DNA of 64,000 bases from the sequence record NC_061448.1. The stretch is one strand, 5' to 3'. The position numbers and the translations under genes are program-made. The notes beneath the pieces were generated by a model. That model did no database searches and was not told the origin of the DNA. It saw only the letters and a list, made by a program, of their open reading frames with translations. Within the stretch, counting starts at the first letter, position 1. Every line of letters starts with the position of its first letter. Below are positions 2,649 to 28,465 of the stretch, piece by piece.

Positions 2649-2657
2649 TATTTATAG
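2649..2657 (-). promoter_or_regulatory. CTATAAATA putative phage-sigma promoter
   Basis: Intergenic, oriented toward ORF 2581; contains the T4 late-type TATAAATA. Confidence 0.45.
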
Positions 2658-2680
2658 CATGTTAAATCACGGAGCCTAAC

Positions 2681-3229
2681 ATGCGTATTCTCTCAGGCGA
2701 CCCGGGAAAGGTTAACTTCGCGTTGTCTGTTCAGGAGTTTAAGGACAATCGCATTAACATACTCGGGACGCGGATGTTTCAAAATCCAATCCAGAACCTG
2801 CATTACGATATGCGCGATCCTGTCAAACAGTTCACTAAAGAGCTTGAAGACATATGGAAGCGCTACGGACCGTTTGATGCGATGTGCTTCGAGCGTTTTC
2901 AATCGCGTGGACTTGGCGGTAACACCATTGAAGCAATCAGTCTTATGCTCGGTGTGCTGTCCGTGTTCGCACTGAAAAAGAACTGCCCTATCGATCTGAT
3001 TACGGCGAGTCAGTGGAAGAACGCGTTTAACCGCACGATGAACCTCAAAGAGTATTACGCGCATTACAACCTGACGTCCAAAAAGAGTCGCAAAGCGATT
3101 CACGAATTTGATGCAAGCCTTATCGGCATGTATACCTTCTACCGCCACACGAACCGGAAACCTTTCGTAGGCTTCAACAGAATCGTTGATGTGTACGTTC
3201 CGAAGTTCTTGGCTGCACCTGTATTGTGA
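2681..3229 (+). CDS. ruvC: RuvC-like Holliday junction resolvase
   Basis: ILSGDPG, FERFQ and HEFDA motifs give the RNase H-fold D/E/D catalytic set. Confidence 0.75.
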   Translation: MRILSGDPGKVNFALSVQEFKDNRINILGTRMFQNPIQNLHYDMRDPVKQFTKELEDIWKRYGPFDAMCFERFQSRGLGGNTIEAISLMLGVLSVFALKKNCPIDLITASQWKNAFNRTMNLKEYYAHYNLTSKKSRKAIHEFDASLIGMYTFYRHTNRKPFVGFNRIVDVYVPKFLAAPVL

Positions 3230-3236
3230 GGCAAAC

Positions 3237-3602
3237 ATGAAACAAGAACAACTGACCAAAACTGTCTTCGATGTACTGTCCGAATTCGGCATCGCAATGT
3301 TCCTCGATCGTGGTGAAGTCGGCTACAACGGTGAGAACTACGCTACGTTTGAAACGCTGTTCAGCGTAAAGTCTGATGTGGAAGGTACTACGTTAGCGCA
3401 AGACCTTCGCGCTAAGATCTCCGAGCATCTGGAGAAGCTGAAAGCGGAAGGTATGACGCGCAATTACAATGGCAACACGCAGCGTATGTCTGTTGTCATT
3501 GAGTCACCGAAACTTACGTACCGTGAGCCGACGGCAAACGAAATCCCCAACGGTGTTCTGTACTCAGTCTCCATAGGCTTCCCCTTAATTCTGGCCAATT
3601 AA
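3237..3602 (+). CDS. hypothetical protein
   Basis: GAGG RBS before ATG 3237. Confidence 0.7.
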   Translation: MKQEQLTKTVFDVLSEFGIAMFLDRGEVGYNGENYATFETLFSVKSDVEGTTLAQDLRAKISEHLEKLKAEGMTRNYNGNTQRMSVVIESPKLTYREPTANEIPNGVLYSVSIGFPLILAN

Positions 3603-3603
3603 T

Positions 3604-3612
3604 CTGTAAATA
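3604..3612 (+). promoter_or_regulatory. CTGTAAATA putative phage-sigma promoter
   Basis: Intergenic, 36 nt before ATG 3649; recurrent motif. Confidence 0.55.
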
Positions 3613-3648
3613 TCCTTACTTGGTTAATGTGGCTTGTGGGGTATAGAA

Positions 3649-4341
3649 ATGGCGAAGTTGAAGAAAGAACGAGAAGTCAAAGTCAAGGCTGCAAAGCCTA
3701 AGAAAGCTGCGACAAAGAAAACAAAGAAAGCAAAAGCTAAAGCAATTCCTATTCGTGTTGTGCAGGATATGCGTCCAATAATTCATTGTCCTGAAATGGA
3801 AGACAAGCCTCAACCGTTTCGTTTTCGTGGGCAGTGCCCAATCACAACATGTCAGTATTGCACACGCGAAACGCCTACCGGATGTATGGCGCTTGACCGT
3901 AAAGAAGCTGCCGACCGTTCAATCTCTAACAGGGAGATCGCTTATTACAAACGTGGCCTCTTCCCGGAACTCAAAGAGATGGATCAAAAGCAGTTGGACA
4001 ACACGATTCGACGCGCACAAAATCGTACCCGTACTGCTATCTGTCTTACTATGTTTATTGCCGGGATTGATGATAGTGATTGCGATAGAACTTTTGTTTA
4101 CGTAGAAGGTCGCAGTCGCATCGTCGATCAGGTGCACAACTATCTGGTGCAGACGTTCAATGATTACCGTCCGTGGATGCTTGCGTATCTCGACGACGAA
4201 GAACGATTTGCTAAGATGGTGGGCAAGATAACCAATTCCGACTTTAATTTAGGTATGGCACTGCGCTTGACGCCTCGTAAGTATCAGACGTTCTGCCAGT
4301 CGCTGCAAAACCTTAAACAATCTGGAGACTCAAATGAGTGA
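3649..4341 (+). CDS. hypothetical protein with Lys/Ala-rich N-terminus and Cys cluster (CPITTCQYC...GC)
   Basis: ORF track; putative Zn-binding motif. Confidence 0.7.
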   Translation: MAKLKKEREVKVKAAKPKKAATKKTKKAKAKAIPIRVVQDMRPIIHCPEMEDKPQPFRFRGQCPITTCQYCTRETPTGCMALDRKEAADRSISNREIAYYKRGLFPELKEMDQKQLDNTIRRAQNRTRTAICLTMFIAGIDDSDCDRTFVYVEGRSRIVDQVHNYLVQTFNDYRPWMLAYLDDEERFAKMVGKITNSDFNLGMALRLTPRKYQTFCQSLQNLKQSGDSNE

Positions 4342-6103
4342 AATCTTCTCTCTCGATCAGTATCGCGCTATGATTAAGCGCAACATCCTGAGCGAGCCTC
4401 AGATGCTGGTGAAGAACCAAACCCAACCACTGGGTCAAATCTCTTTCCAGTGTCCCGGCGACAACTTCAAAATGAAGGACGTCATCATCCCTGCTACGCG
4501 TAACGCTGTCGACCTGACTCAGCAAGCTCCGTTAGAAAACCTGCTGGCGTGTAGCCAACTGAAATCTCTGATCCAGTTGCAGCGCGTTGTACTGCTGAAC
4601 CCTGACGATATGCCACAACCGGGCGAAGGTATTCCTCAGCCTTCTCTGTCTCAACCGCCTGTCGCTGGTGCACTGTCTGTTGACGGTACAACTATCCCGA
4701 ACGCGACTGTGATCGTTGAGCAGAATGGCAACGTCTGGACCGGCACTTCAAATGGCGCTGGCGTGTTTACTGTTGACGTGTCTGGTCTTGAACAGGGTGC
4801 GTTCTCAATCACTGTTACTGCTGACGGTTTCACACCTGCTCGTTACAACTACGAAGCTGGTGAACAGCCTCTGCAACCAATGCCTGAGCCTACCGTACAC
4901 GCTGTCTTTAATGAGACAACTGTTTCCGGTACGACTGTTGCGAATGCTAATATCGTTGTAACAGTAGCGAGCAAAGCATTCACTGGACAAGCAGACGGCA
5001 CTGGTGCGTTCTCTATTGCTGTTGACCCACTGCCGTTTGGCACAATCCATCTGGCATTTGACGCGCCTGGCTATCTGATCAAACAGATCGATGTTGTTAC
5101 CGATAGCGTTCCGGGCGTTGCGCAGATTAACAGCGCAGCTTTCCTGTCTACCGCACTTGCAGGTAAAGCAAACCCTAACGGTGAAGTCGAAATCCTGATC
5201 GACGGTCAGTCTAACCAGTTCGTCACTGCTGATGCAAGCGGCAACTGGACTGCGACTGTCGGCGCTATTAAAGGCGCTGTGTCTATTCGTGCTGTTGAGA
5301 TTGACGGTTACGATGAAGCAACTGCGACAATGCAACCGACTAAACTCCAGTTCGGTGCTATCGCAGTTGACGATGCAGATGCGTTCGGTGAGAATCGTAC
5401 CACGGTAACTGGTACTATCGCTGGTCTGAATGCCGAAGCGAACGACATTGCTGTGACCGTGACTGTTCAGGCGGGTCTGTACGAAGGTACAGTCAATCTG
5501 TCTGCCGGTACTTTCAACATCGCTGGTGTTGATGCGAAAGCAGGTGTGGGCGCTACTGGCGTTGTTAATGTTACCTCTGCGTTTTACGAAGATGGTAGCA
5601 CGTCGTTCACGATTCTGGAAGAGTTCACTGCACCTACTCTTGAGCAGGCTGTTGATGGGCAGACTTCTGTTATCGGTACTACCGTTGCAAGCACCACAGT
5701 TAAAGTCACCATGAACGGTGAAACTAAAACTGCGTCTTCAAACGCGCAGGGTGCATTCAGCGTTTCAGGCTTCACGAATGTTGTGCCGGGTCCTGTTCAG
5801 ATTGAACTGTCTCGCGCTCAATATCTGACAGCCTCCTTCGAAGTGAATCAGACTGTACAGGCTCGCGGTGAGCTTGATGCAGATCTGAAAGCGGGTGAAG
5901 ATACTGCTACAGGTTTAGCAACCCCAGGTTCCACTGTGACTCTGACTCAGGGTAGTGTTACCGGTGATGCTGTAGCAGACGCGAGCACTGGCGAGTTCAT
6001 TATTACTCTGTCTGGTACTCTGGTCGATGGACAAGCTACGCTGACCGTTAAACATGCGGGCTACGTTGACTTTACTGACACTTTGGCTGTCGCTACAGCT
6101 TAA
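4334..6103 (+). CDS. Ig-like repeat virion decoration/fibre protein
   Basis: Repeated ~75-85 aa Gly/Thr/Ala/Val-rich units (GT..ANA.V.V...G......A...G.F.+), bacterial Ig-like pattern. Confidence 0.75.
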   Translation: MSEIFSLDQYRAMIKRNILSEPQMLVKNQTQPLGQISFQCPGDNFKMKDVIIPATRNAVDLTQQAPLENLLACSQLKSLIQLQRVVLLNPDDMPQPGEGIPQPSLSQPPVAGALSVDGTTIPNATVIVEQNGNVWTGTSNGAGVFTVDVSGLEQGAFSITVTADGFTPARYNYEAGEQPLQPMPEPTVHAVFNETTVSGTTVANANIVVTVASKAFTGQADGTGAFSIAVDPLPFGTIHLAFDAPGYLIKQIDVVTDSVPGVAQINSAAFLSTALAGKANPNGEVEILIDGQSNQFVTADASGNWTATVGAIKGAVSIRAVEIDGYDEATATMQPTKLQFGAIAVDDADAFGENRTTVTGTIAGLNAEANDIAVTVTVQAGLYEGTVNLSAGTFNIAGVDAKAGVGATGVVNVTSAFYEDGSTSFTILEEFTAPTLEQAVDGQTSVIGTTVASTTVKVTMNGETKTASSNAQGAFSVSGFTNVVPGPVQIELSRAQYLTASFEVNQTVQARGELDADLKAGEDTATGLATPGSTVTLTQGSVTGDAVADASTGEFIITLSGTLVDGQATLTVKHAGYVDFTDTLAVATA

Positions 6104-6111
6104 TCCTTTGA

Positions 6112-6129
6112 TAGGGGCTTCGGCCCCTA
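6112..6129 (+). terminator. GC hairpin with TTCG loop (weak terminator or processing site)
   Basis: TAGGGGC-TTCG-GCCCCTA; no U-tract. Confidence 0.45.
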
Positions 6130-6156
6130 AACTGAACTGAAATTCGGAGAACTACC

Positions 6157-6822
6157 ATGAGCGTTAAAAAGAGCAACACCACTGTTAAGCCTATCACTCT
6201 CGCAACTTACAACGAACGTTACGGTGACGACATTGTTGCACCTATGTACGTTGCTAACCGTACTGAACCGCGCGGTAACGTAGCATTCAGCGCGAAAGAC
6301 GATCTGGGCCAGCCTGTTGCAGTTGTCGTACCGGCAACCTTCATCCCTGTCGACCTGACTCAGCAAGCAACCAAAGCAAGCCTGTTGCAGTCTACCCACC
6401 TGCGTCGCGCACTGCGTATGAACCAGCTGGTGATCATCGACACTAAGAGCGCGGAAGAATATCTTCGTACCAGTGCTCTGGCGCAAGCTGAGATGCGTAA
6501 CCTGAACAAGATGAACGCGTCTATCTCTGCTGACCTGAACGAATACGAAGACGGCGAGCTGGCTGAAATCGATCTGGGCGGCGGTACTCGCAAGAAAGAG
6601 ATTCACTTCGAAGGCGCAGAACAGCTTTCTGAAAACCAGTTCGTTAACGCATTCATTCTGCGAGCTGCTTCTGACAGCGAAGAATCTGACGACAACCTCG
6701 TTCGTGAGTTCCTGTCTCGCGGCCTGAGCCTGCCGGTATCTGAACTGAAAATCCTGCGCGAGCACATCACTCGTCCTGCAATCGTTGACCTGATCGTTCA
6801 GGCGCTCGACGACGCAGAATAA
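6157..6822 (+). CDS. probable virion protein; shares N-terminal domain with 4334-6103
   Basis: GGAG RBS; strong phage codon bias; PAT..VDLTQQA motif. Confidence 0.75.
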   Translation: MSVKKSNTTVKPITLATYNERYGDDIVAPMYVANRTEPRGNVAFSAKDDLGQPVAVVVPATFIPVDLTQQATKASLLQSTHLRRALRMNQLVIIDTKSAEEYLRTSALAQAEMRNLNKMNASISADLNEYEDGELAEIDLGGGTRKKEIHFEGAEQLSENQFVNAFILRAASDSEESDDNLVREFLSRGLSLPVSELKILREHITRPAIVDLIVQALDDAE

Positions 6823-6835
6823 AAGTCCTACAGAC

Positions 6836-6875
6836 AAAAAAAAATGGGAGGCCCCGAAAGGAGTCTCCCATTTTT
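6836..6875. terminator. bidirectional intrinsic terminator
   Basis: A-run + ATGGGAGGCCCC-GAAA-GGAGTCTCCCAT + T-run between convergent genes. Confidence 0.8.
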
Positions 6876-6876
6876 A

Positions 6877-7047
6877 TTACTGCGCTTGTTGTCGTAGACG
6901 ATCAAGGAATGCTGATGATTCGCCTGGCTTAATCGTTCGTGGTTCAACTTTGATACGATTGATACGACGCTGCATGTTACGACGATAGCGTTCACGCAGA
7001 GCCTGCACCGAGTGTTGCTTAAACTGTGATCTGAACTTCAGGGCCAT
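6877..7047 (-). CDS. small basic hypothetical protein
   Basis: AAGGA RBS before ATG 7047; Arg-rich; directly follows primase. Confidence 0.55.
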   Translation of the reverse strand: MALKFRSQFKQHSVQALRERYRRNMQRRINRIKVEPRTIKPGESSAFLDRLRQQAQ

Positions 7048-7048
7048 G

Positions 7049-8107
7049 TTATTTCCTTTTGTTCTCAATTGCTTTCGGACGATTCCAACCTAACGCTTTC
7101 GCTGGCATGATACACTTCTTACCGTGAATGTCACGCAGCGTCATGCGAACTTCTTTGATCAATTTGAACGGTGCGTTATCAGGGTCGAGCTTAATCAGCT
7201 TGCCGTCTTCATCAAACTCACGAGGTAACTTGAAGTGCTTAACTGGTACTGGGGAGTTGCGCTCAAACTCCTCTTTGATTTTTGTACGCAACAACTTCCC
7301 GCCACCATCGTTATCTGTCATCGTGTAGACAACGCTCACACCCAGCATCTCAATTGTTCTTCGTTTCGTTTCACCGAACTGCTCTGCACCAAGCACCGCC
7401 AACGCCGGTATGCCATACGATAAAAGAGCGAGCGCATCACGAGGACCTTCCACCAGCACAATGTATCGCAGTTTATATTTCTTCAAACACTCTTTCACAA
7501 GCGGCAGCGGGAACAGGCCTTTGTCTTTTGCCCAATCGCCTTGCGAGTTCACATAGCTGGTGCCGTTCATTTGCTTACGCAGATACGCAGCGATACCGCC
7601 TATGTATTTCGTGCCATGTTTACACGGGAAGAAGCAAACGTTGGTGCCTGTGTGCTGTGCATTAAGCAGACCACCAGCAGCACGAACAAGCGCACCTGGA
7701 TAGCCACGCCACTCAACATCAAGCGGCCACTCCATGTAGCTCTTACGACCGAGCGCTTTCATCAACAGACCGACAGAAGGGTATGTACCAATCTTCGAAC
7801 CAATCTGCTCATACGTTTTAAGCAACGCACTGAGAGAGTTCGTGCCGGCGTCTTTCAACGCCCAGCCTTTAATCTCTTGCAGTCGCGCGTGTGCCGCTAA
7901 TTTGTTCCAACCGCCTTTCTCACCGCAACCGAAGCAGTGAAAGAATCCTAGAGGAATCTCCATCCCTACAGAAGTGTAAATACCACAACTAGGAGTCTTA
8001 TCGCTGTGGAAAGGACAGCACACCATAACAGTGTCGCCGTTATATTTCTTGTCGCCCGGCAATTTGCCGATCTCGTCAAGTATTATCTGATGGACATCTT
8101 CTGCCAT
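7049..8107 (-). CDS. dnaG: DNA primase (CHC2 zinc finger + TOPRIM)
   Basis: VCCPFHSDKTPS...FHCFGCG zinc finger; LVEGPRDAL and TDNDGGG TOPRIM motifs. Confidence 0.9.
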   Translation of the reverse strand: MAEDVHQIILDEIGKLPGDKKYNGDTVMVCCPFHSDKTPSCGIYTSVGMEIPLGFFHCFGCGEKGGWNKLAAHARLQEIKGWALKDAGTNSLSALLKTYEQIGSKIGTYPSVGLLMKALGRKSYMEWPLDVEWRGYPGALVRAAGGLLNAQHTGTNVCFFPCKHGTKYIGGIAAYLRKQMNGTSYVNSQGDWAKDKGLFPLPLVKECLKKYKLRYIVLVEGPRDALALLSYGIPALAVLGAEQFGETKRRTIEMLGVSVVYTMTDNDGGGKLLRTKIKEEFERNSPVPVKHFKLPREFDEDGKLIKLDPDNAPFKLIKEVRMTLRDIHGKKCIMPAKALGWNRPKAIENKRK

Positions 8108-8147
8108 ACCATCCTCTGTTCGTTTCGTAATTTAACGCATATAAGCA

Positions 8148-8156
8148 TATTTACAG
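8148..8156 (-). promoter_or_regulatory. CTGTAAATA putative phage-sigma promoter for primase
   Basis: TATTTACAG on plus strand, 40 nt before primase ATG. Confidence 0.55.
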
Positions 8157-8172
8157 AAAAGGGATAACTAGA

Positions 8173-8508
8173 ATGGGTAATCCACATCGCTACGTGCATA
8201 GTGCTGTGCGGCGCTTTTATGATAAGCACTGGTTACAGTTATGCGACCTGATAAAAGTCGAGCCTCAGACTTTAGGCGCGTTCAATACGCAGGGTGATAT
8301 GATTGGTCTGTCACTGCCTGTTGATACAGACATTGAGGCAATGACCAAGAGTCTTCGCCTGATGTACGCTACTGACGAAGAGGGTGTAGAAGTACGTTGC
8401 TACCTGTTTGGTACTCGCTACTACAAGTTCGTATTTTTTAAAGGCATGATTGCCGTAAGCGAGGATGACAATGAGAACGTTCGCAAACGTACCAGCGCGA
8501 GTCAATGA
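8173..8508 (+). CDS. hypothetical protein
   Basis: ORF track; divergent from primase. Confidence 0.65.
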   Translation: MGNPHRYVHSAVRRFYDKHWLQLCDLIKVEPQTLGAFNTQGDMIGLSLPVDTDIEAMTKSLRLMYATDEEGVEVRCYLFGTRYYKFVFFKGMIAVSEDDNENVRKRTSASQ

Positions 8509-9556
8509 TACCCGCGCATTGTCACGCATCGGCAAGATGATCGATGCTGCCCTTGACGTAAAGAATCAAGAGAAGCGCTGGCCAAAGAAACGCGTCAGCC
8601 CTTCGATGTTTCCTATCTGTGCGATTCAGGAAACAGCAAAACTGATTTACCAGAAGCACAACAACGCAATGACCGGAGAATCAGGCACGTTGCTGAACAT
8701 CTTTGCTAAAGCAGGGACAGGGATGCACGAGTCGTTGCAGAACGCTCTGGGACACAGCGGCCAGATGGTTGGTCACTGGAAATGTACGAATGACAAATGC
8801 CCTGAACACGCCAAGACTAAAGGTAAGATGGTCGACGGCAAGTATAAGAAGGGCAAGTACACGCGAACTCGAAGCACGAACAATCGCTGTCCAACGTGTG
8901 ATAAACCTATGGCTTATGCAGAACTCAAAGTCCTGTACAAGTCACTCAAAGGTTACGTTGACGGACTGATTGATAATCTTGACGGCACGTACAGCCTGAT
9001 CGATTTGAAATCGACTATGGTGAGCAAAGCTGCTGACGGAACTTTCTTCGTTAAGTACCACCGCTTCCAGATCGCAACATACGCATACCTGCTGAAAAAA
9101 CGTTACGGCTACAACATCGTGGACTATACCCTCGTTTACGTGCCACGCGACAACCCGAAGAAGTTTGTCGAAAAGACCTTTGTGTTTGACGAGGCAGAGT
9201 CGAAACGTGCCAAAGACTTTATGATGGAACAAATACGCGCATGGGATGCTGCGGTAAAATCGGCGCGCACTGGTGATCTGCTGCCAGCTCTGAAACGTAA
9301 GCCGTGCAAGAGCGCCGAGTATTATTGGGACGAGTTCCACGGATATGATACATGCCCTTTTGTTGACTATTGCTTTATTCAATCACACATGATTGACTTC
9401 ATGAAGAAGTTAGAGCAGCGAATCATGGCCAACCCCGACCTGACTTATATGGAAATCGTAAGCACAGGGCGGAAAACTCAACAACAAGGTCTGCTGCCGG
9501 ACAAGAAGCAGAAGTCTCAACGTCCGAAGCATATCGTAAAAACATTTGAGCTATGA
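8465..9556 (+). CDS. Cas4-like PD-(D/E)XK exonuclease
   Basis: VSPSMFPIC, VDGLID...LIDLKST, QIATYAY, C-terminal C..C..C; start uncertain. Confidence 0.75.
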   Translation: MTMRTFANVPARVNDTRALSRIGKMIDAALDVKNQEKRWPKKRVSPSMFPICAIQETAKLIYQKHNNAMTGESGTLLNIFAKAGTGMHESLQNALGHSGQMVGHWKCTNDKCPEHAKTKGKMVDGKYKKGKYTRTRSTNNRCPTCDKPMAYAELKVLYKSLKGYVDGLIDNLDGTYSLIDLKSTMVSKAADGTFFVKYHRFQIATYAYLLKKRYGYNIVDYTLVYVPRDNPKKFVEKTFVFDEAESKRAKDFMMEQIRAWDAAVKSARTGDLLPALKRKPCKSAEYYWDEFHGYDTCPFVDYCFIQSHMIDFMKKLEQRIMANPDLTYMEIVSTGRKTQQQGLLPDKKQKSQRPKHIVKTFEL

Positions 9557-9963
9557 GCATACAAAAAGATTATGAACGATCACTGCGCCGACTTAAGGAG
9601 TCTGTCCACCGCACTGAGCAGCTAGGTTATATTGTGCCTCGCTGCGTTGACGTCGTTCTCTCTAAGGTGAAACCACCTGATCAGGTTGTGTCGAGGAAGT
9701 ATCTGGTGATGCTGTTGTTATTCAGTCAGTCCAGTGAAAACCTCCGCTCAGCCTTGACCATGAGAGAACAATTGGTTGTCAAGATGGCTCTACTCAGTCG
9801 CAAGCACCCAACGCCAGAGATTCAACGTCGCATTAGACGCCTCGAAGAACTGGTCAATAATCAAGACAGGAATATCGAAAGTCAGTTGCTGTTGCTTGAC
9901 TACAGAGCAAACATCCTGATTGATATTCTTGACGGTAAAGAACCCAACTCACGATACACTTGA
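9553..9963 (+). CDS. hypothetical protein (coiled-coil)
   Basis: ATGA overlap with upstream stop. Confidence 0.7.
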   Translation: MSIQKDYERSLRRLKESVHRTEQLGYIVPRCVDVVLSKVKPPDQVVSRKYLVMLLLFSQSSENLRSALTMREQLVVKMALLSRKHPTPEIQRRIRRLEELVNNQDRNIESQLLLLDYRANILIDILDGKEPNSRYT

Positions 9964-9970
9964 GGTACTC

Positions 9971-10450
9971 ATGGAAATTTATGTAAGCCTGAGTCAGGAC
10001 AGCACGTACAAGAACCGCAGTCGCGTGTCTAGCCCTGAATCTACTACTGGTCGTGCGGACTTGTCAGACTATGCTTCATTGGAGAAGAAACTGCGTCTGA
10101 CCGAGGAAGCGAAAGACAAAGAGAAACTGGCTCAGAAAGCTGGTGGCGGGGATTCTGTAAAGGGTAAGAAAGGCGCCAAGAAAAAGGGCGATGATAAACC
10201 CGAAGAAGACGATACTGACATTGATACCGACACTGATTCAGATGGAGGCGATGATGATACAGATGACTCTTCCGATGACTCTGGAGACGACTCCGATGGA
10301 GACTCTAAAGCTAAGAAATCAGGAAAGAAATCTAAGCCGTCAGGAGATGAAGACGCAGAAGACACAGAAGACCCTGACACAGACGAACCCGAAAGTGATG
10401 ACGGGGATGCAGATGCTGAAAGCGTTGATGACGAGGACCTCGAAGAGTGA
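9971..10450 (+). CDS. Asp-rich low-complexity protein (MEIYVSLS...)
   Basis: GAGG RBS before ATG 9971; D/S/K-rich tail. Confidence 0.75.
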   Translation: MEIYVSLSQDSTYKNRSRVSSPESTTGRADLSDYASLEKKLRLTEEAKDKEKLAQKAGGGDSVKGKKGAKKKGDDKPEEDDTDIDTDTDSDGGDDDTDDSSDDSGDDSDGDSKAKKSGKKSKPSGDEDAEDTEDPDTDEPESDDGDADAESVDDEDLEE

Positions 10451-10943
10451 TCCCGTAGACGTGCCGAAAACGCATGACGCGATGATCGAGATTCTGATCG
10501 CTATTCGCTACATGTGTACGAAGCGTATGATCTTTCCTGTCGTTGCTGCGACCATTGAACAGCGTAACAGCTATCTGGTGATGAACAAGCTCTGTTTCCA
10601 AATGAAGCCGAGCTTGTTCTTTAGTGCTGTGCAGGACAGTAACTGCAAGGTGAACGTGTGTTGGCTTATGCGAGCCTTCACACGCACTGCGCTTCATTTC
10701 GATTTGCTGCCTGTCATTGCAGATAAAAGTGGTGACTTCCAACCGTTGGTGAGTCGCTTCTTCACTCAGGATGATCCTGACTTTGCGTATCGACGTTTCT
10801 ATGATGTGCGTAAGCTGCCTCCAGTAACGGACATTCGCAAGCCCCGCCTGTATACGCTTAACGGAGTTGATTATGGCGTACAAGTCACTAGCCAAGAAAC
10901 CGAAGAAGTCTCTCGCTGCGAAAGAAGCAGATATTCGGAATAA
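10428..10943 (+). CDS. hypothetical protein, start uncertain
   Basis: Globular-looking part of track ORF 10191-10943 begins near the upstream stop. Confidence 0.55.
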   Translation: MTRTSKSDPVDVPKTHDAMIEILIAIRYMCTKRMIFPVVAATIEQRNSYLVMNKLCFQMKPSLFFSAVQDSNCKVNVCWLMRAFTRTALHFDLLPVIADKSGDFQPLVSRFFTQDDPDFAYRRFYDVRKLPPVTDIRKPRLYTLNGVDYGVQVTSQETEEVSRCERSRYSE

Positions 10944-11529
10944 GGCACACAAGCAAGCGAAGCGCGGCAAGCTCGCTCAAGCAGTGAGGACAATCAGTGC
11001 TGCCGCTTCTAAATCTCGACGCATGACTAAAGGTGAGAAACGCGCAATTCAGTTGCAGCCATTCAAACCGCAAGTTGTGCCTCAGCCACCGAAAACTCCT
11101 CTGATGGAAAAGGGTCTGTCGCTTACTGCGCTGATGCGCTCGACTCCCCGCCTGATGAAAGAGAACGCGATGGAGTGTTACGTTAACGGTGTCAAACGCG
11201 GTAAGACTAACAAAGGTCTGCCGATGATTATGGCAAACGTTCGACACAAAGATCCACTGCGCCCTAATAAAACAGTGCGCATTCACAAGCCGATGATTAT
11301 CGGTCTGGATGACCCGTACAAGCCTATTTCAAAACAAAAGCGTGTGCTGGTCAGTTGTCCGTGTGAGAACTATGTTTTCATGTGGGAGTATGCGAACGCC
11401 GAACACGGCTGTGCGCGAATCATTTACGGTAATGGCGAGCCACCTGACTTCACTAACCCAGGACATGCACCTGGTCTGTGCAAACATCTGATGGCCTTAG
11501 CTGATCAAGTCAAACGCAACGGAGATTAA
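10873..11529 (+). CDS. SWIM zinc-finger protein with basic N-terminus
   Basis: VSCPCE...GLCKHL matches SWIM CxC-xn-CxH; GGAG RBS. Confidence 0.7.
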   Translation: MAYKSLAKKPKKSLAAKEADIRNKAHKQAKRGKLAQAVRTISAAASKSRRMTKGEKRAIQLQPFKPQVVPQPPKTPLMEKGLSLTALMRSTPRLMKENAMECYVNGVKRGKTNKGLPMIMANVRHKDPLRPNKTVRIHKPMIIGLDDPYKPISKQKRVLVSCPCENYVFMWEYANAEHGCARIIYGNGEPPDFTNPGHAPGLCKHLMALADQVKRNGD

Positions 11530-11534
11530 TCTCG

Positions 11535-11816
11535 ATGCTCTTTAAAAATCATGCTGGTGGAGTAATACCGAATCAACCAATCATTCACTCTATTGCAGAG
11601 ATGCACCGACGTGTCGCAGAACTGAATGGTGAACTGAAAGCTGCTGGTTGCACGATAGTTGAGAACTGCGGTGAGATGTTGATTGAAGTTCCTGCTGGTG
11701 CGTCACTCGTTGTTGACGGCATCATTCAACGTCACATCGACATGTTCAAAGGTCCTGTCGTTAGTCGTCCTGCTCGTTTGCAAATCGGAGGCGAAGATGC
11801 AGAAGCAGAAGTTTAA
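11535..11816 (+). CDS. hypothetical protein
   Basis: GGAG RBS. Confidence 0.65.
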   Translation: MLFKNHAGGVIPNQPIIHSIAEMHRRVAELNGELKAAGCTIVENCGEMLIEVPAGASLVVDGIIQRHIDMFKGPVVSRPARLQIGGEDAEAEV

Positions 11817-12231
11817 TCCGAACGAACCCTACTCGGTGTCGTTGCACTTCGGTCCGCACATCGTTCACGGTCATGCGCAAGAAAGCGCGTTCGGCCAAGT
11901 GATGCAGAACATGCTGTTGCGTGAAATCAATAAGACGTGCGACAAGATGTTCAAGTCTCTGACTGATGTTCCTGTCGCTGCTACTCCTACGTTTGATTGT
12001 GCAGAAGTAGAAGCAAGCAACATTCTCGCGGCTGTTCAGCGTTGGCATGAAGTCATTGCCAAAGAGCCACCAGCGAAAGAGTTCGAACCATGCTCTGTGC
12101 CTGACTGGATGCGCCCTGGTCTTCGTGCTAAAGGCATGACTGATGCTCAGATCGATAACATCATTATCACTGGCATCGAACCGTCATTTGAAGATCGCCC
12201 AGGCATCGTTCTACGTACGGTGAGTTCGTAA
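11797..12231 (+). CDS. hypothetical protein
   Basis: GGAGG RBS before ATG 11797. Confidence 0.7.
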   Translation: MQKQKFNPNEPYSVSLHFGPHIVHGHAQESAFGQVMQNMLLREINKTCDKMFKSLTDVPVAATPTFDCAEVEASNILAAVQRWHEVIAKEPPAKEFEPCSVPDWMRPGLRAKGMTDAQIDNIIITGIEPSFEDRPGIVLRTVSS

Positions 12232-12446
12232 TGGCATGTGCCGGTTGTGGTCGTCGTAGCTCTCGCATAAGCTACAACGCCAGCTCTGCTCCTCAGCTTG
12301 ATATTGAAGAGGACGATACGTTAAGCGCTGCGCGTTTAACTCCTATGGGTTGGGTACGCACCTGCGTTAAGTGCGGGAAAGTATCTGAGCCTTCTCCCTT
12401 TGCAGAAAACATCAATAAGCCATGTGACTGCACTTTAGACGAGTGA
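12231..12446 (+). CDS. small Cys-rich protein (CxxC, CxxC, CxC)
   Basis: TAATG coupling; six Cys. Confidence 0.65.
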   Translation: MACAGCGRRSSRISYNASSAPQLDIEEDDTLSAARLTPMGWVRTCVKCGKVSEPSPFAENINKPCDCTLDE

Positions 12447-13174
12447 TCATGATGAACAATCTCGTTTTGCACGTTCAAGGTTTAGACTACTGCCGCTTCT
12501 ATGCAGAGAACATGGTTCATGTGCAGTTCGAAAACCCTCTGTGCCCTGTTCCGCCCGAAGCGCCGTACAATCAACCGATTAACGACCGTAAGCTCCACCA
12601 GCTGATTCGAGAGATCGACACTGCTTTCGACAACGCGATAAGCCGCACTGATTTGGAATTTCCAATCGGTCCGATTCTTTATCGCTATCGTTCGCTGTAT
12701 GGCAACTACGCCGCTCAATACAAAGACGATCTTTCTCCTCAGCGTGACACTCGCGTGAAAGGCAACACGCTGGTTCTCTCGCCTCCAGTACCTGAGCAGG
12801 GTAACGATGAAGACGATAAAGCGTTCTCGTATCGCTTCATCAAACACACTGCCGAACAGGTTCAGAGTTACATCTGGATGGTATGTCTCGATCAGTATGC
12901 GCGTGAGCAGACCGATACAGTGCTGCCGAGCCCTCCATGGGCATTCGAGCCACCTGAGCGTGACGGTGCTGCTGCTTTCCTGACAGCGCATCACAAGATC
13001 TTGAATGATCTGATGCCTCCTATGATGGACGCACATAGCGACACTCTGGACATTCATGTGTCGTTGCGTGACTACGGCCTGTCTGTTATCTTCCCGCTGG
13101 TGGCTGAGTGCCGCAACGTTATCTACGCAGCGTGGACCATCCCTAACGCTAAAGGACAAAAACCAAATGTCTGA
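12443..13174 (+). CDS. hypothetical protein
   Basis: GTGA overlap; 243 aa. Confidence 0.7.
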   Translation: MIMMNNLVLHVQGLDYCRFYAENMVHVQFENPLCPVPPEAPYNQPINDRKLHQLIREIDTAFDNAISRTDLEFPIGPILYRYRSLYGNYAAQYKDDLSPQRDTRVKGNTLVLSPPVPEQGNDEDDKAFSYRFIKHTAEQVQSYIWMVCLDQYAREQTDTVLPSPPWAFEPPERDGAAAFLTAHHKILNDLMPPMMDAHSDTLDIHVSLRDYGLSVIFPLVAECRNVIYAAWTIPNAKGQKPNV

Positions 13175-13700
13175 TGTTATTCTGTTTGACAAACAAAATG
13201 AGTGGGAAGACTTCGGTAGTGCTGTCTACGAAGAATTTCGTTTGAACGTAATGACAGGCAGTAGCAGTGCGAGTCAGATTCCAACTGTCGCACCGTTCGA
13301 AGACGTGAAGCACCAACTCAGCTACTCGAACATTCTGCCTGAGGGTGAACAGTCGCCTATCGTTGTGCTGGATATCATGGTCATGGAAGTTGAGCTGGCG
13401 GAAGGTGAATCTCGCAACTACGATGCAGATAGTCTGGACGAAGCTGTGCGTAAAGTTGTAGCACTGTATCAGGCTCGCGCTCGTGATCTCGACTGCCACC
13501 TGACAGGCAACTTCATCACAGCAGACCACAAAGTCAATGGCGCGTTGCTGCGTATCTATCGCAATCAGGACTTCGTGTGTAAGGGTCACCCTGAACTGCT
13601 GCATGGCAAACCGCTCGGCATGTTCCACTGCGACAAATGCGGTGAGATGCAAATGGCCGGTGCATTCCACCTGCCTAAAGAGGAAACTCAAAATGGTTAA
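13167..13700 (+). CDS. hypothetical protein with C-terminal Cys/His finger (CKGHP...HCDKCG...H)
   Basis: AAGGA RBS before ATG 13167. Confidence 0.7.
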   Translation: MSDVILFDKQNEWEDFGSAVYEEFRLNVMTGSSSASQIPTVAPFEDVKHQLSYSNILPEGEQSPIVVLDIMVMEVELAEGESRNYDADSLDEAVRKVVALYQARARDLDCHLTGNFITADHKVNGALLRIYRNQDFVCKGHPELLHGKPLGMFHCDKCGEMQMAGAFHLPKEETQNG

Positions 13701-14160: not shown

Positions 14161-14211
14161 ATCCCAGCGGTGGCCCTGTGCTGCCGCTTTTGTCGTTCTG
14201 GAGAAATTTCT

Positions 14212-14533: not shown

Positions 14534-14542
14534 CTGTAAATA
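14534..14542 (+). promoter_or_regulatory. CTGTAAATA putative phage-sigma promoter
   Basis: Intergenic, 32 nt before the sigma-like gene. Confidence 0.55.
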
Positions 14543-14574: not shown

Positions 14575-15612
14575 ATGAACAATAAGTCGAATCTCACAGG
14601 CGGTCAGATAGAAAGCGTCATGGACACAATGCTTCATGACTGCCTCCGTGAGATTGTTGAGAACACCGACGTATTCGATGTGCAACTGACCTATCTGTTG
14701 AACATGATTACCTCGAATAAGAAGCGCAAGCCGTATAACGCAGAAACGCGTGACCGTGCAATCAGCCTTCTGATTAAAGCGCTCTCTGTGCCTCGCGATC
14801 AGAAAATGATTTATATTCAGGAACTCAAAATGGAGCGCAACTTCATTTACGTCTTCCTGGAAAATGTAATTAAACGGTACTACACGACATACGTTGAATT
14901 GTATCGGGCATTCGTCAGTACGCAAGATCCGATTCGTCGTGAAGCGTACTCGAAGCGCCTGAACGTGTACGTGAAAATGTTTGGTGCAGAGTCTCGCTCC
15001 AAGCTGTTCGTCGCGCTGTGCCGCTTGAATGATTTGCTGCCGCAGTTCATGGAATACTTCCACTCTGTGGTTGCTGACTTCTATAGACTATGCAGCAAGC
15101 AAACAAAGTTTTATGTTGATACGAACCGCGGTAAGCTGTATGACAGCAAAGACGTGCGCCAGAACTTCCTGCGTAACGTCATCGTGGCTATCAACAAGTA
15201 TGACTCGTCGCGTGGTGCGATTGTGAGTTATACGAAGTGGTGGATCTTGAACGCCCAAACCTGTAGTAGCAGCGAGCATGAATATGGCATCGCTTACACT
15301 ATTCCCCAGACTCAACGTAAGAAACTGGCGACAGGTGAAGACACCACTTCTCTGAATTTCTCGGTAAGTCTCGATACTCCTGCGAACGAATCTGATGAAG
15401 GTGCGGACGCGTCCCTACATCAAAAAGTGAGTGACCATCATCACTTAGAAGATCACGTAGATAGTGAAAGACGTACTGAAAAACTGAGACTGCTTATTAA
15501 GCGCGTAGACCCACTCGGCGTTGCACGATTGACGATGGATGTGGGTGAGGAGTTCGACAAGTTCGAACTTGATATGATGCGTAGACATATGCAAGCTCAA
15601 GGGCTAGCCTAA
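14575..15612 (+). CDS. phage RNA polymerase sigma factor (sigma70 region 2-like)
   Basis: AINKYDSSRGAIVSYTKWWILNA resembles sigma70 regions 2.3-2.4; FSVSLDTP resembles the region 3 SLD motif. Confidence 0.75.
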   Translation: MNNKSNLTGGQIESVMDTMLHDCLREIVENTDVFDVQLTYLLNMITSNKKRKPYNAETRDRAISLLIKALSVPRDQKMIYIQELKMERNFIYVFLENVIKRYYTTYVELYRAFVSTQDPIRREAYSKRLNVYVKMFGAESRSKLFVALCRLNDLLPQFMEYFHSVVADFYRLCSKQTKFYVDTNRGKLYDSKDVRQNFLRNVIVAINKYDSSRGAIVSYTKWWILNAQTCSSSEHEYGIAYTIPQTQRKKLATGEDTTSLNFSVSLDTPANESDEGADASLHQKVSDHHHLEDHVDSERRTEKLRLLIKRVDPLGVARLTMDVGEEFDKFELDMMRRHMQAQGLA

Positions 15613-15614
15613 AA

Positions 15615-15623
15615 CTGTAAACA
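15615..15623 (+). promoter_or_regulatory. CTGTAAACA putative phage-sigma promoter
   Basis: Intergenic, 37 nt before SSB ATG. Confidence 0.5.
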
Positions 15624-16923: not shown

Positions 16924-16931
16924 TCGTTAAC

Positions 16932-16960: not shown

Positions 16961-16979
16961 CAATCTGGACTATCCAACA

Positions 16980-19508: not shown

Positions 19509-19515
19509 TAAATTC

Positions 19516-19539
19516 GGGAGGGCTTCGGCTCTCCCTTTT
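19516..19539 (+). terminator. intrinsic terminator
   Basis: GGGAGGGC-TTCG-GCTCTCCC-TTTT. Confidence 0.85.
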
Positions 19540-19557
19540 CCCGTGTAAGGAGAACCA

Positions 19558-19980
19558 ATGCGTACTCAAATCTTTACTGCTGATATTGTCAATCTCGAAA
19601 CCGTAACTGTCAACGAAGAAGACGGTTCAGAGATTCGTACACCGACAATCGTGCCTAACGTTGAAGGCGAAATGACTGTTGGTGTTAACGAGCTGGTGGG
19701 TCTGTCGAATGGCATTACCGAGCATCCTGACTCTGACTGCCGCCTGATCGTTATCGTGTCGCCTGATGCAACGCCTGTGTTCTACGACGATGCACTGGCG
19801 AACTACTTCGATCCAATCGAGCGCGTAGCTGATATTGAAGCTGGCAACATCGGTAGCATTGTCGGTATGCAGGTCATTCGTGGTCTGCAAGCAGAACATC
19901 CTTACGTTGCAGTTGTCGAAGTGCGTGACGCTGATACCGTAGAGATTCTGCGTTACAACGCGTCTGTAGTGAAACTGTAA
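19558..19980 (+). CDS. hypothetical acidic protein
   Basis: AAGGAG RBS. Confidence 0.75.
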   Translation: MRTQIFTADIVNLETVTVNEEDGSEIRTPTIVPNVEGEMTVGVNELVGLSNGITEHPDSDCRLIVIVSPDATPVFYDDALANYFDPIERVADIEAGNIGSIVGMQVIRGLQAEHPYVAVVEVRDADTVEILRYNASVVKL

Positions 19981-19986
19981 ATATCA

Positions 19987-20007
19987 AGTGGGAGGCATAC
20001 TCCCACT
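19987..20007 (+). terminator. hairpin, possible terminator
   Basis: AGTGGGAG-GCATA-CTCCCACT; poor U-tract. Confidence 0.45.
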
Positions 20008-20018
20008 ATCTCTCGCTT

Positions 20019-20069
20019 GATAGGCAATGCGCCACAAGCAAACAACCTAACTCGATAGGCAATGCGCCA
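20019..20069 (+). repeat. 16-bp direct repeat GATAGGCAATGCGCCA x2
   Basis: Copies at 20019-20034 and 20054-20069. Confidence 0.85.
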
Positions 20070-20079
20070 GGAGTGATTT

Positions 20080-20781
20080 ATGAAAAAGATTCAGACCAAC
20101 TTTATACCGACCGAAGCACTGCATGGTCTTATTCACGGTTACGCTCGTCAGGCTAAACTGCCAGATGCTGCGAGCAAGACGTTGTTCTACGTTGACGTCA
20201 CCGAACGTGGTGCTAACGATGCACTGTACTCTATTCTTCGCCGTGAGATTCCATCAAACATCGTCGGTACTGCATACGATTCCATTGTTAGTTTCCGTGG
20301 ACACACAGCACCTGCCCAACTTCCTATCGTGCTGTCTGAAAGTTTATTCCACATAAGTTTAGAGAGACTCTCTAGTTCTCTGGCTGGCATCTTTGATGCT
20401 CTTGGTCGCACCGTGCATACGAACGACACGCAGATCACTATCTATGGTGAACCTGCGATTGAGAAACTTCTGGCGGTTGTCCGAGACACTCAGTTTAAGA
20501 GCTTCTTGGACGTATGTAATCCGGAACTCGCCTGTGGTGACTTCGACCTACAGTCTAATATCACTGTAGACAACTTTGTGTCTATGGCAATCGACCCTGA
20601 CTTTGAAAAGCGCATTCAGGAAATGCCTGCAACAACGTACACGTTTGGCCGTGACTTCATGTTCATGCACTATGAAGACCTGCACAAAGTCATCCAGATG
20701 CTACGTAGATATAAAAAGAATTGTACGCTGCATCCAGACTTAATGCGCTATTACTTCATGAACGTAATCTGTAAATACTGA
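20080..20781 (+). CDS. hypothetical protein
   Basis: AGGAG RBS. Confidence 0.75.
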   Translation: MKKIQTNFIPTEALHGLIHGYARQAKLPDAASKTLFYVDVTERGANDALYSILRREIPSNIVGTAYDSIVSFRGHTAPAQLPIVLSESLFHISLERLSSSLAGIFDALGRTVHTNDTQITIYGEPAIEKLLAVVRDTQFKSFLDVCNPELACGDFDLQSNITVDNFVSMAIDPDFEKRIQEMPATTYTFGRDFMFMHYEDLHKVIQMLRRYKKNCTLHPDLMRYYFMNVICKY

Positions 20782-22690: not shown

Positions 22691-22763
22691 GAATATTCTT
22701 AGCCTGCTCTCTAATTTCTATATGTTGGCAAGTAGTGCTGACGTATCGTTATTGGAGAATAAC

Positions 22764-23063: not shown

Positions 23064-23122
23064 CTTATTCTAACGCTAATTTTGACCTGTCAATAAACAC
23101 AAACCGAACTCGGGGTACTCAC

Positions 23123-24869: not shown

Positions 24870-24923
24870 GCAAATAACTGGACAAAATAGCTCTTTATAT
24901 ACACACGCGACCTATGATACAAT
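24870..24923 (+). promoter_or_regulatory. early promoter P1: TGGACA box + extended -10
   Basis: GCAAATAACTGGACA, 33 bp, TGaTACAAT. Confidence 0.8.
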
Positions 24924-27260: not shown

Positions 27261-27314
27261 GACTGCGGCGTTACGGCGCCGCTCATTATCACTTTAAAGA
27301 GAGACACGACTATG
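27261..27314 (+). repeat. leader element copy 2
   Basis: GACTGCGGCGTTACGGCGCCGC...AGAGAGACACGACTATG. Confidence 0.75.
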
Positions 27315-27890
27315 ACCGTAGTTGCATTCATCAAAACAAACGACACTACTCTGGCGACTGGCGAGATTCTGATTAAGCGTCCTCACTTCGAAGCGTTCTG
27401 CGAGTGTGAGATTGCTGTGCTGTACACTACAGGCAAAGAGCAGGGTAGCGCAAAAGCCTACGCACTGACTGACCTCATGTTGCACATTGTCGATAAAGAG
27501 CGCGTTAAGATCGTGTTCAAAGACAAGACGCCTATCGACGCGTCACTGATTCGTGAATATCAGTATGACGAGAAAGAAGATATGGCGATTGAAGCAGAGC
27601 AGCCTAAACTGCTGACCGACGTGCCTCGCTTCAACATCGTGTCTGACCTGAGCAGTGAATACAGTGTGACGCTGCCGTACGAAGCGCGTATGTGTATCGC
27701 TCAATACGTGTGTGGTCTGTTCAACACTGCGACGTTCAAACGTCGTATGACGCGCCTGAACTTTAAAGTCGTGTCTCTGATTACGCGAGGTCGACGTGAA
27801 GAAGGTATGCCTTACGCTATCTTCCGCCATCGCCTGAGTCAGCTTGCTACAATCTCTGACGGCAAGAACGCGATGCAAGTCTATCTGTAA
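27312..27890 (+). CDS. hypothetical protein
   Basis: ORF track. Confidence 0.75.
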   Translation: MTVVAFIKTNDTTLATGEILIKRPHFEAFCECEIAVLYTTGKEQGSAKAYALTDLMLHIVDKERVKIVFKDKTPIDASLIREYQYDEKEDMAIEAEQPKLLTDVPRFNIVSDLSSEYSVTLPYEARMCIAQYVCGLFNTATFKRRMTRLNFKVVSLITRGRREEGMPYAIFRHRLSQLATISDGKNAMQVYL

Positions 27891-27938
27891 ACAACCAACG
27901 CCCTGCATATCGCGGGGCTTTTCTGTTTGGAGAATGCT

Positions 27939-28199
27939 ATGATTCATTATACCCGTGACGAACTCGAAGAAATGGATGTGGTCGAGCTTGACCAGATCGC
28001 TAGTGACCGTGGTCTGCTTGATGACTTCGACGAAGAAGACGATCAAGACGAACACATGCTGGTGGGTTTGATTCTTGACGACCAGAACGAGCAACGCATG
28101 GCAGAAGAAGACGCTGCCGACAAACAACGCGCCGAAGATGATCGCGACCCGCGTATCAATCGTCGTGAAGATCAAGACGGCTCGGATGACTACTGCTAA
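27939..28199 (+). CDS. acidic protein with Rho-N/HeH-like motif
   Basis: GGAG RBS; LEEMDVVELDQIASDRGL. Confidence 0.7.
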   Translation: MIHYTRDELEEMDVVELDQIASDRGLLDDFDEEDDQDEHMLVGLILDDQNEQRMAEEDAADKQRAEDDRDPRINRREDQDGSDDYC

Positions 28200-28417
28200 T
28201 GACACCTACTGAACTCAATGAATATCTGCATCTGGTACTGACGCCTGTTGCTATGGCATGGCGTGAGCAGTTCCCCAAGAAGAAGCAGGTGATGGCGTCT
28301 GTTAAGACAGCGTACTCCTGTCGAATCAAATTCGTCGAAGACCGTGACGTTGAAAAACAGTGGCAAGCATTCTGCCGCACACACGGTCTCAAAAACGAAG
28401 AGACTCTCGAAATCTAA
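28199..28417 (+). CDS. hypothetical protein
   Basis: TAATG coupling. Confidence 0.7.
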   Translation: MTPTELNEYLHLVLTPVAMAWREQFPKKKQVMASVKTAYSCRIKFVEDRDVEKQWQAFCRTHGLKNEETLEI

Positions 28418-28420
28418 ATC

Positions 28421-28451
28421 AAAGGGCTGCCATTGCTGGTGGCCCTTTTTT
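28421..28451 (+). terminator. intrinsic terminator
   Basis: AAAGGGCTGCCA-TTGC-TGGTGGCCCTTTTTT. Confidence 0.85.
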
Positions 28452-28456
28452 CATTT

Positions 28457-28465
28457 CTGTAAATA
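28457..28465 (+). promoter_or_regulatory. CTGTAAATA putative phage-sigma promoter
   Basis: Directly after a terminator, 32 nt before ATG 28498. Confidence 0.55.

Follow-up and report, generated by a model that had tools for sequence, protein, structure and literature searches.

The genome of the Erwinia phage pEa_SNUABM_1 (NC_061448.1, 266,939 bp, genus Alexandravirus) carries a repeated short sequence, AAT-CTGTAAA-TA, which, with a probability of roughly 85%, is the -10-like core of a phage promoter of a "middle" class. The motif, called class A here, was noticed in a stretch of 64,000 nucleotides (the window) that is identical to bases 186001-250000 of the plus strand; positions are those of the window unless they are given as genome positions. 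The comparisons described below support a distinct, -10-only, phage-specific class of promoter-like sites, separate from the host-type early promoters of the same genome. It is proposed that the host core RNA polymerase, together with a phage sigma-like factor, begins transcription a few bases past the motif. The resulting leaders of ~20-35 nt would precede the genes for primase, single-stranded DNA-binding protein (SSB), DNA polymerase, clamp loader and ligase, as well as the gene of the sigma70-family protein gp243.

Genes of pEa_SNUABM_1 are directed rightward from 1 to 47 kb, leftward from 47 to 188.6 kb, and rightward again from 188.6 kb. Most of the virion genes and many of those for replication belong to the leftward block; the window begins shortly before the last direction switch. 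The genome-wide motif tests cover the whole genome with its RefSeq annotation (337 starts and proteins). The counts expected for 7-mer and 9-mer words on each strand were derived from Markov models.

The class A motif and its sites

The initial annotation of the window described a motif, CTRTAAAYA, in front of core genes and without an apparent -35 element. Its motif coordinates are all correct, and the enrichment is real: the window contains nine exact copies against 1.30 expected, and none of 100 shuffles reaches nine. In the whole genome there are 33 exact copies, 32 of them co-oriented with the local genes, and G stands at the R of CTRTAAAYA in 31 of these 32. The word CTGTAAATA occurs 25 times on the sense strand, where 0.7-1.1 copies are expected. 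The core CTGTAAA is present 62 times, and 61 copies are sense once the leftward primase gene is properly counted. Between 22 and 27 sense and 8-9 antisense copies are expected for this core; the antisense strand, with one or two, is depleted.

The position of the motif is as characteristic as its orientation. In the interval of 15-60 nt upstream of annotated starts, CTGTAAA ranks first among all 7-mers. It ends 15-60 nt before a start on the same strand in 31 of its 62 copies (2.9% expected, P=4e-31), typically at a distance of 30-42 nt. The logo of 40 start-proximal sites reads A A T/A C T G T A A A T A. Compared with the motif first described, the true core, AAT-CTGTAAA-TA, extends further to the left and less far to the right. 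Upstream of the core, information is confined to the adjoining A-A-T/A, which confirms the lack of a -35 element, and downstream of it the same 40 sites have no conserved positions that could form a separate -10. The canonical sigma70 promoter (-35 TTGACA, a 17 bp spacer, -10 TATAAT) is not matched by class A sites.

Three other explanations of the motif were rejected. A reading similar to the MotA box, with the motif at -30 and a -10 element downstream, does not agree with the absence of conserved positions after the motif. When the motif is read as an extended -10, its TG is misplaced by one base, and TAAATA, which would be the hexamer, has no T at -7. Chance, or an artefact of stop codons in the form CTG-TAA, would not suffice either, as only a minority of copies overlap a stop, and chance is far exceeded by the enrichment, by the spacing and by the conservation across phages.

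A T-run lies within 30 nt upstream of 10 of the 40 start-proximal copies, and some copies directly follow a terminator hairpin. A rival reading is that the motif acts in RNA, as a processing site or a translational operator in the 5' leader. A strict sense-strand orientation and a fixed distance to the start codon would also be expected of such a signal. However, several copies follow closely on a terminator or stand in a divergent spacer, so that a transcript from upstream would not include them, and the depletion of the antisense strand fits the avoidance of spurious initiation. Moreover, no conserved secondary structure was seen around the motif. The sense-only copies, the antisense depletion, the fixed spacing and the terminator-motif-gene order are expected of a promoter and less so of an RNA-level signal, and an RNA-level role is highly improbable.

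The five copies that were described at the outset as purely intergenic (3604, 8148-8156 on the minus strand, 14534, 15615 and 28457) do stand before annotated start codons, at the distances given in Table 1. The statement that such copies precede core genes also holds, since a DnaG-type primase gene, the sigma-like gene and the SSB gene are among those downstream. The primase gp229 (7049-8107, minus strand) contains a Zn-ribbon and a Toprim domain. A promoter for its gene is most simply placed in the 65-nt divergent spacer, where the class A copy is the sole candidate promoter motif on the primase strand; the arrangement is the same in phage fHe-Yen9-02. Three exact copies in the window had been overlooked (19975, 20769 and 27885), and further cores are found at 439, 41460 and, with less certainty, 45716. 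Core-only copies of CTGTAAA inside genes, at 10155, 46786 (minus strand) and 63424, are probably due to chance. The copy at 19975 is followed by a leader of gp247 (19984-20079) with a stable hairpin, GUGGGAGGCAUACUCCCAC, two direct copies of GATAGGCAATGCGCCA and a folding z-score of -4.0.

Some observations speak against a promoter at every copy of the motif. The copies at 20769 and 27885 are doubtful as promoters because a terminator hairpin and a U-run precede the next gene; any transcripts that they start would be short or attenuated. The large gene gp324, just past the end of the window, has three exact copies in its interior. In addition, a search for RNA-seq of an infection found none, and four public RNA runs, searched with 14000-19900, gave contigs of related phages and no read pile-ups or starts. 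At most 15% of the sampled words were present in the public RNA runs, and one 16.8-kb contig of a relative is probably DNA.

Conservation of the motif among giant phages

According to RefSeq names and Pfam, the genes downstream of class A copies in pEa_SNUABM_1 have mainly replication or nucleic-acid functions. They encode a DNA methyltransferase, a ParB-like protein, an NAD-dependent ligase, DNA polymerase, an HNH endonuclease, a clamp loader, primase, the sigma factor, SSB and several unknowns. Phages with a sigma 24-78% identical to gp243 share the gene order sigma-SSB-RecA. In nine phages and three metagenome contigs, CTGTAAA is a conserved element of the sigma-SSB spacer, while the remaining spacer diverges. 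The word stands before SSB in fHe-Yen9-02, Yoloswag, JA11, NCTB, Lu11 and vB_PpuM-Lauda, although sigma is only 24-42% identical across these phages and the contigs. Afa-NA1 has CTGTTAA at this place, and PaBG has CTGTCAATA, which is exactly the variant recorded at 23087 of the window. The three metagenome contigs (225-311 kb, 40-55% GC, sigma 40-42% identical) show aaaa(C/G)TGTAAA(T/C/G)A in the sigma-SSB spacer and at other gene boundaries, and in two of them the first core base is G (GTGTAAA). Whether the host is Erwinia, Pseudomonas, Xanthomonas, Yersinia or a marine one, at 40-55% GC, the phages have the motif in unchanged form. The relative represented by the 311-kb contig has an extra, conventional sigma gene (Sigma70_r2 and Sigma70_r4, 292 aa) downstream of RecA, at 15086-15964 of the contig piece examined.

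A motif of this kind is already known, as a prediction, in the distant relative Lu11. In the GenBank record of this phage (NC_017972), aaaaCTGTAAATAcatagta and its sisters, including the one before SSB, are annotated as "putative middle/late promoter"; the record of pEa_SNUABM_1 has no such annotation. The Lu11 genome was reportedly described by Adriaenssens et al. in 2012. The two phages share the word, the A-rich lead-in (aaaaCTGTAAATAc...), the pre-SSB position and the order sigma-SSB-RecA. The A-rich lead followed by CTGTAAAT(A), which corresponds to aaaaCTGTAAATA or aaaaCTGTAAATG in the Lu11 features, is present in pEa_SNUABM_1 and stands before SSB in the same synteny. The Lu11 sigma is 37% identical to gp243. 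Differences also exist: Lu11 belongs to another genus and infects another host, its sigma gene has no copy directly upstream, and the label in its record is a prediction. A search of the available literature returned no paper tying CTGTAAATA or CTGTAAA to phages and no experimental work on the motif. As judged from the sequences compared, class A is very probably a deeply conserved, predicted middle-class promoter across a very wide group of giant phages.

The copy in front of the sigma gene behaves differently from the one in front of SSB. Alexandravirus, Yoloswag, JA11 and fHe-Yen9-02 have it directly upstream of the sigma gene. It is absent from this position in Lu11, PaBG, NCTB and the three metagenome contigs, including the marine ones, where the sigma gene abuts or overlaps the preceding gene. 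Because only the closer relatives have class A upstream of sigma, this copy is not a conserved feature of the system. In the neighbouring spacer, a palindrome, CTCAATATTGAG (15640-15651), overlaps the SSB Shine-Dalgarno sequence; it is kept in fHe-Yen9-02 and JA11, and Yoloswag reads CTCAATTTTGAG. By analogy with T4 gp32, the palindrome may be a translational operator for SSB autoregulation, and its predicted hairpin is weak.

Three probable promoter classes and two candidate sigma factors

Two further motif families were found by k-mer enrichment in intergenic DNA. Consequently, the window holds three motif classes (early, class A and class B) and not the two transcription programs that had been proposed. 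The early class consists of strong host-type extended -10 elements (TGnTAnAAT) before runs of small unknown genes, and presumably corresponds to the first class of the initial annotation. Small unknown proteins are encoded by the dozen in the early region (~24-60 kb of the window). A 19-nt element, GCAAATAACTGGACAAAAT, is common to the early promoters and lies ~33 nt before the extended -10 (24879-24897, 30351, 44378 and 47789, with further sites at 52817, 56264, 58238 and 59633). The element is too far from the extended -10 to be a -35; it may be an UP-like or factor-binding site.

Class B has the consensus wCGC-TAATTT-nA and no -35. CTAATTT occurs 22 times when counted by strand block, and 21 copies are sense after the leftward primase gene is taken into account. 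TAATTT has 46 sense and 3 antisense copies against 20-53 antisense expected, and for 26 copies the distance from the end of the word to a start is 22-46 nt. Class B stands before the genes for both tail-sheath paralogs, PAAR, endolysin, the portal region, a head-adjacent ATPase and many genes of the virion block; in Lu11, nTAATTT stands before the major head, ATPase and sheath genes. This class changes the reading of the two class A variants that had been listed at 2649-2657 and 23087. Their coordinates are right, and in both cases the adjoining class B TAATTT is better placed for the gene that follows.

The protein encoded at 14575, gp243, had been called sigma-like, and family profiles and a structure model show it to be a true member of the sigma70 family. 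It is the only unambiguous sigma in the genome. Its 345 residues comprise an N-terminal part of 235 residues similar to sigma regions 1.2, NCR and 2, a disordered linker, and a small C-terminal helical domain (helices modelled at 288-341). Taken alone, gp243 scores 13.8 bits against Pfam Sigma70_r2, below the cut-off of 24. The family is more informative: 30 of 47 diverse members match Sigma70_r2, and the Lu11 and PaBG orthologs reach the gathering cut-off. The family profile finds region 2 of a primary sigma (SigA) in the PDB, and the YxxWW motif is kept. The best structural match of the AlphaFold model (pLDDT 81) is E. coli sigma70, with residues 3-235 superposed on residues 111-446 (regions 1.2-2.4) at Z 11-16 (top 15.8) and a root-mean-square deviation (rmsd) of 3.3-4.6 Å. 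Region 4 was not recognised in gp243, as no family member matches Sigma70_r4 and the best structural matches end at residue 235. On this modelling, gp243 is a genuine RpoD-like sigma and not a minimal, gp55-like one. RpoD-like sigmas have been described for group 2 jumbo phages (Iyer et al., PMC7824862).

A host-type promoter was not found upstream of gp243; positions 1-20000 of the window contain 15 consensus matches against 19 expected, none of them intergenic with TG. What lies upstream is the class A copy 32 nt away, the terminator at 14166-14188 and a class B site at the head of the gp230 cluster. The small protein gp242, encoded just upstream, was considered as a co-factor, and its language-model and structure look-alikes were uninformative.

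The second candidate, gp336, is encoded beyond the window (genome 265349-266488). In PaBG, gene 112, located between the topoisomerase gene and DnaB, was suggested by its authors to encode a possible SigmaE-like factor (PMC7412058). gp336 is the syntenic ortholog of PaBG gp112 (26% identity, E 2e-28), and the family of the two has 304 cluster representatives. Among its 100 best named language-model matches, 49 are Sigma70_r2 clusters, with scores of 0.94-0.95. The model of P0121, an ortholog 96% identical to gp336 (pLDDT 82), superposes with residues 146-379 on whole extracytoplasmic function (ECF) sigmas at Z 7-10 (VIA-align). These include M. tuberculosis sigmaH and sigmaL, E. coli sigmaE and AlgU, and nearly all top matches are sigmas. 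Residues 142-235 of the model superpose on sigma70 region 2 at 3-4.5 Å. Furthermore, a broad profile weakly aligns the DL..(E/D)L..KA...YY stretch of gp336 to region 2 of the gp243 family. From these models, gp336 is likely, though not certain, to be an ECF-like sigma. The genes gp331-gp337 follow early extended -10 promoters at genome 258571 and 262394, and no terminator intervenes ahead of gp336, so that the topoisomerase-gp336-DnaB operon lies behind an early host-type promoter. The equivalent operon of PaBG is preceded by an extended -10, TGCTACAAT.

These components can be arranged in a three-class sigma cascade with class A as its second tier, and the chances of this arrangement are about even. 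Host sigma70 would read the extended -10 early promoters, one of which would drive the topoisomerase-gp336-DnaB operon. The early ECF-like candidate gp336 would then read CTGTAAATA and lead to expression of the replication genes and gp243. Made from its CTGTAAATA promoter, gp243 would in turn read wCGC-TAATTT before the tail-sheath, PAAR, endolysin and portal-region genes. The assignment of CTGTAAATA to gp336 is argued from circuit logic and structure and falls slightly short of an even chance. gp336 is placed first because an early promoter precedes its gene, whereas none of the host type was found for gp243; the gp243 gene is more likely a product of the motif than the source of its reader. 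T at -12, A at -11 and T at -7 are the positions recognised by the primary-type domain 2 of sigma70 with region 1.2. TAATTT keeps all three and for this reason fits the primary-type domain 2 of gp243, which has region 1.2 and the WW motif.

Several points weigh against this cascade. ECF sigmas normally need a -35 element, and class A sites show none. gp336 has no sigma match in Pfam, NCBIfam or PDB sequences, and none of 74 family members has a Pfam match. An hhalign comparison of gp336 with the gp243 family is weak (E 0.0046, with a probability of 7.6% for the broad and 0.2% for the close alignment). Foldseek E-values for the model of the gp336 ortholog are all >0.3, and a Z of ~10 is within the range for unrelated helical proteins. 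Some of the genes behind class B are non-structural, namely the gp230 operon and a gene for a tRNA methyltransferase, and the split between middle and late is therefore not clean.

The pairing of sigmas with classes is ambiguous because TAATTT is another -10-only class and gp336 another sigma-like protein. The initial annotation proposed that gp243 itself reads CTGTAAATA as a -10-only promoter, in the manner of T4 gp55 with TATAAATA, and may autoregulate. On this view gp243 would stimulate its own gene, and TAATTT would be read by gp336 or by a modified host holoenzyme. This pairing is possible, and it is the less likely of the two. It agrees with the status of gp243 as the sole unambiguous sigma in the genome and with the co-occurrence of the motif and gp243 homologs in every relative examined. 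The motif is one position off the T4 late consensus TATAAATA, and the copy at 2649-2657 contains exactly that consensus. Key residues of region 2.3/2.4 are invariant across the family (W223 and T229, with N226 nearly so), like the motif core. Since both the sigma residues and the motif are nearly invariant, their co-variation is uninformative. The pairing nevertheless lacks an early promoter that could supply the first gp243 molecules. Early gp336 reading TAATTT would switch on virion and lysis genes before replication genes, and TAAATA does not have the T at -7 that would be expected for a sigma with a primary-type domain 2. As for autoregulation, the arrangement with a class A copy directly upstream of the sigma gene is missing from Lu11, PaBG, NCTB and the marine contigs.

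A different reader would be the sigma70 holoenzyme of the host, diverted by some small early protein of the phage, either through appropriation of the T4 AsiA/MotA type or through modification of the polymerase; the two phage sigma-like proteins would then play no part. The TA of TAAATA corresponds to the first two -10 positions, and the many small proteins of the early region offer candidates for such a factor. Some group 2 jumbo phages have AsiA-like proteins (PMC7824862). However, there is no second element at a fixed distance, unlike in the combination of a MotA box with a -10, and the constancy of the motif across such different hosts fits a phage-borne reader better. A redirected holoenzyme is improbable, although less so than an RNA-level signal.

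Neighbouring features and comparison with known systems

The coordinates of the class A sites and of the other features are collected in Table 1. Several of them stand next to observations of their own. The annotated start of gp250 is only 4 nt from a class B site, and an in-frame ATG ~50 nt downstream, preceded by a Shine-Dalgarno sequence (GGAGAA), looks the likelier real start. The second gene of the cluster headed by a class B site is gp231 (8471-9556), which is annotated as "CRISPR/Cas system associated". The Pfam match of its metagenomic counterpart identifies it as a PD-(D/E)XK, Cas4-like nuclease. Outside the window, genome 85557-86895 is a 1.3 kb region without an open reading frame (ORF) of >62 aa. 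It has 73-89% identity in relatives and is unannotated in pEa_SNUABM_1 and in most of them; it has no tRNA and no Rfam match, and it sits between class A and class B copies on the gene strand. An ORF-free leader of ~280 nt (genome 262403-262681) separates an early promoter from gp333, and a class A copy is located 60 nt upstream of that promoter.

Table 1. Promoter-like motifs, terminators and the sigma gene (window positions unless stated otherwise)
Feature	Position	Strand	Context
Class A core CTGTAAATA	3604..3612	+	36 nt before gp225
Class A core CTGTAAATA	8148..8156	-	40 nt before DnaG-type primase gene gp229, in 65-nt divergent spacer
Class A core CTGTAAATA	14534..14542	+	32 nt before sigma gene gp243
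Class A core CTGTAAACA	15615..15623	+	37 nt before SSB gene gp244
Class A core CTGTAAATA	28457..28465	+	32 nt before gp259, right after terminator-like hairpin and T-run (~28424-28451)
Class A core CTGTAAA	439..445	-	31 nt before gp220
Class A core CTGTAAA	41460..41466	+	30 nt before gp287, within the end of gp286
Core CTGTAAA, uncertain	45716..45722	+	End of gp295, 81 nt before gp296
Exact CTGTAAATA	19975..19983	+	Over gp246 stop codon, 96 nt before gp247; structured leader with two GATAGGCAATGCGCCA repeats follows
Exact CTGTAAATA	20769..20777	+	Last codons of gp247; strong terminator hairpin with U9 before gp248
Exact CTGTAAACA	27885..27893	+	Over gp256 stop; terminator-like hairpin before gp257
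Variant CTATAAATA	2649..2657	-	67 nt before gp222
Variant CTGTCAATA	23087..23095	+	4 nt downstream of class B TAATTT (23077-23082), before gp251
Class B TAATTT (CTAATTT)	2605..2610	-	23 nt before gp222
Class B TAATTT	8128..8133	+	39 nt before gp230, head of gp230-gp242 cluster upstream of sigma gene
Class B (CTAATTT)	22712..22717	+	Before gp250; annotated start at 22722
Class B core (GCTAATTT)	23077..23082	+	40 nt before gp251, after terminator
Plain host-type extended -10 TGATATAAT	2612..2620	+	Points at gp223
Early promoter	24879..24923	+	Upstream element AACTGGACAAAAT, then TGATACAAT ~33 nt later
Early -10 elements	24915, 30387, 36181, 44414, 47824, 52853, 56300, 59669
Early promoters beyond the window	genome 258571, 262394
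Terminator-like hairpin	14166..14188	+	Between RNA ligase gene and gp242, upstream of sigma gene
gp243 sigma70-family protein	14575..15612	+	Annotated sigma factor; SSB gene gp244 starts at 15661

Phage T4 offers an example of a promoter made of one element. Its late promoters (TATAAATA) are read by gp55 with gp33 and the gp45 clamp. Class A is similar in having a single -10-region element without a -35, in that TGTAAATA and TATAAATA are one base apart, and in that a phage reader of the sigma family is postulated. There are also clear differences. TATAAATA occurs only once in the 267 kb genome of pEa_SNUABM_1, at 2649-2657 on the minus strand. Class A stands before the genes for primase, SSB, sigma, DNA polymerase, clamp loader, ligase and methyltransferase, whereas virion and lysis genes carry TAATTT. 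Moreover, gp243 is an RpoD-like protein of 345 aa, in contrast to the minimal gp55-type sigma. The analogy with gp55 that was drawn initially therefore fails in the class of genes (replication, not structural) and in the type of sigma (an RpoD-like domain 2, not a minimal one).

The cascade proposed for pEa_SNUABM_1 would resemble that of Bacillus phage SPO1 (gp28, then gp33/34), which likewise has three promoter classes and two phage sigma-like proteins, the first placed behind an early and the second behind a middle promoter. SPO1 differs in that a -35 accompanies the -10 in its promoters and in that its proteins share no sequence relationship with these, and the cascade of pEa_SNUABM_1 is an inferred one. 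In phiEco32, gp36 is a phage sigma70-family protein proposed to direct the host core RNA polymerase to promoters with a single -10-region element. That phage has another motif, belongs to another group, and has one phage sigma and one phage-specific promoter class.

It was stated in a 2026 review that phage sigma factors "likely" redirect the host polymerase in jumbo phages without their own RNA polymerase (PMC13282480). pEa_SNUABM_1 is a clean test case for this idea, with three sharp promoter classes and two candidate sigmas. As a tentative generalisation, somewhat less probable than the cascade in this one phage, the whole clade of jumbo phages that lack an RNA polymerase (Alexandravirus, Lu11, PaBG, NCTB and marine relatives) may run a two-sigma cascade. 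A gp336-type factor would read the nearly invariant, -10-only promoter aaaCTGTAAATA, and an RpoD-like factor made from that promoter would then read TAATTT late promoters. On this supposition, the clade would be very large and mostly uncultured, and the gp336-type protein would be a so far unrecognised, highly diverged ECF-like sigma that is made early and needs no -35.

The class A motif stays constant while the sigma drifts to 24% identity. It does not represent a new principle; it permits a simple in vitro assignment of sigmas to promoters. With its help, operons and timing classes can also be annotated in dozens of jumbo phages of Erwinia, Dickeya, Yersinia and Pseudomonas, some of which are under development against fire blight.

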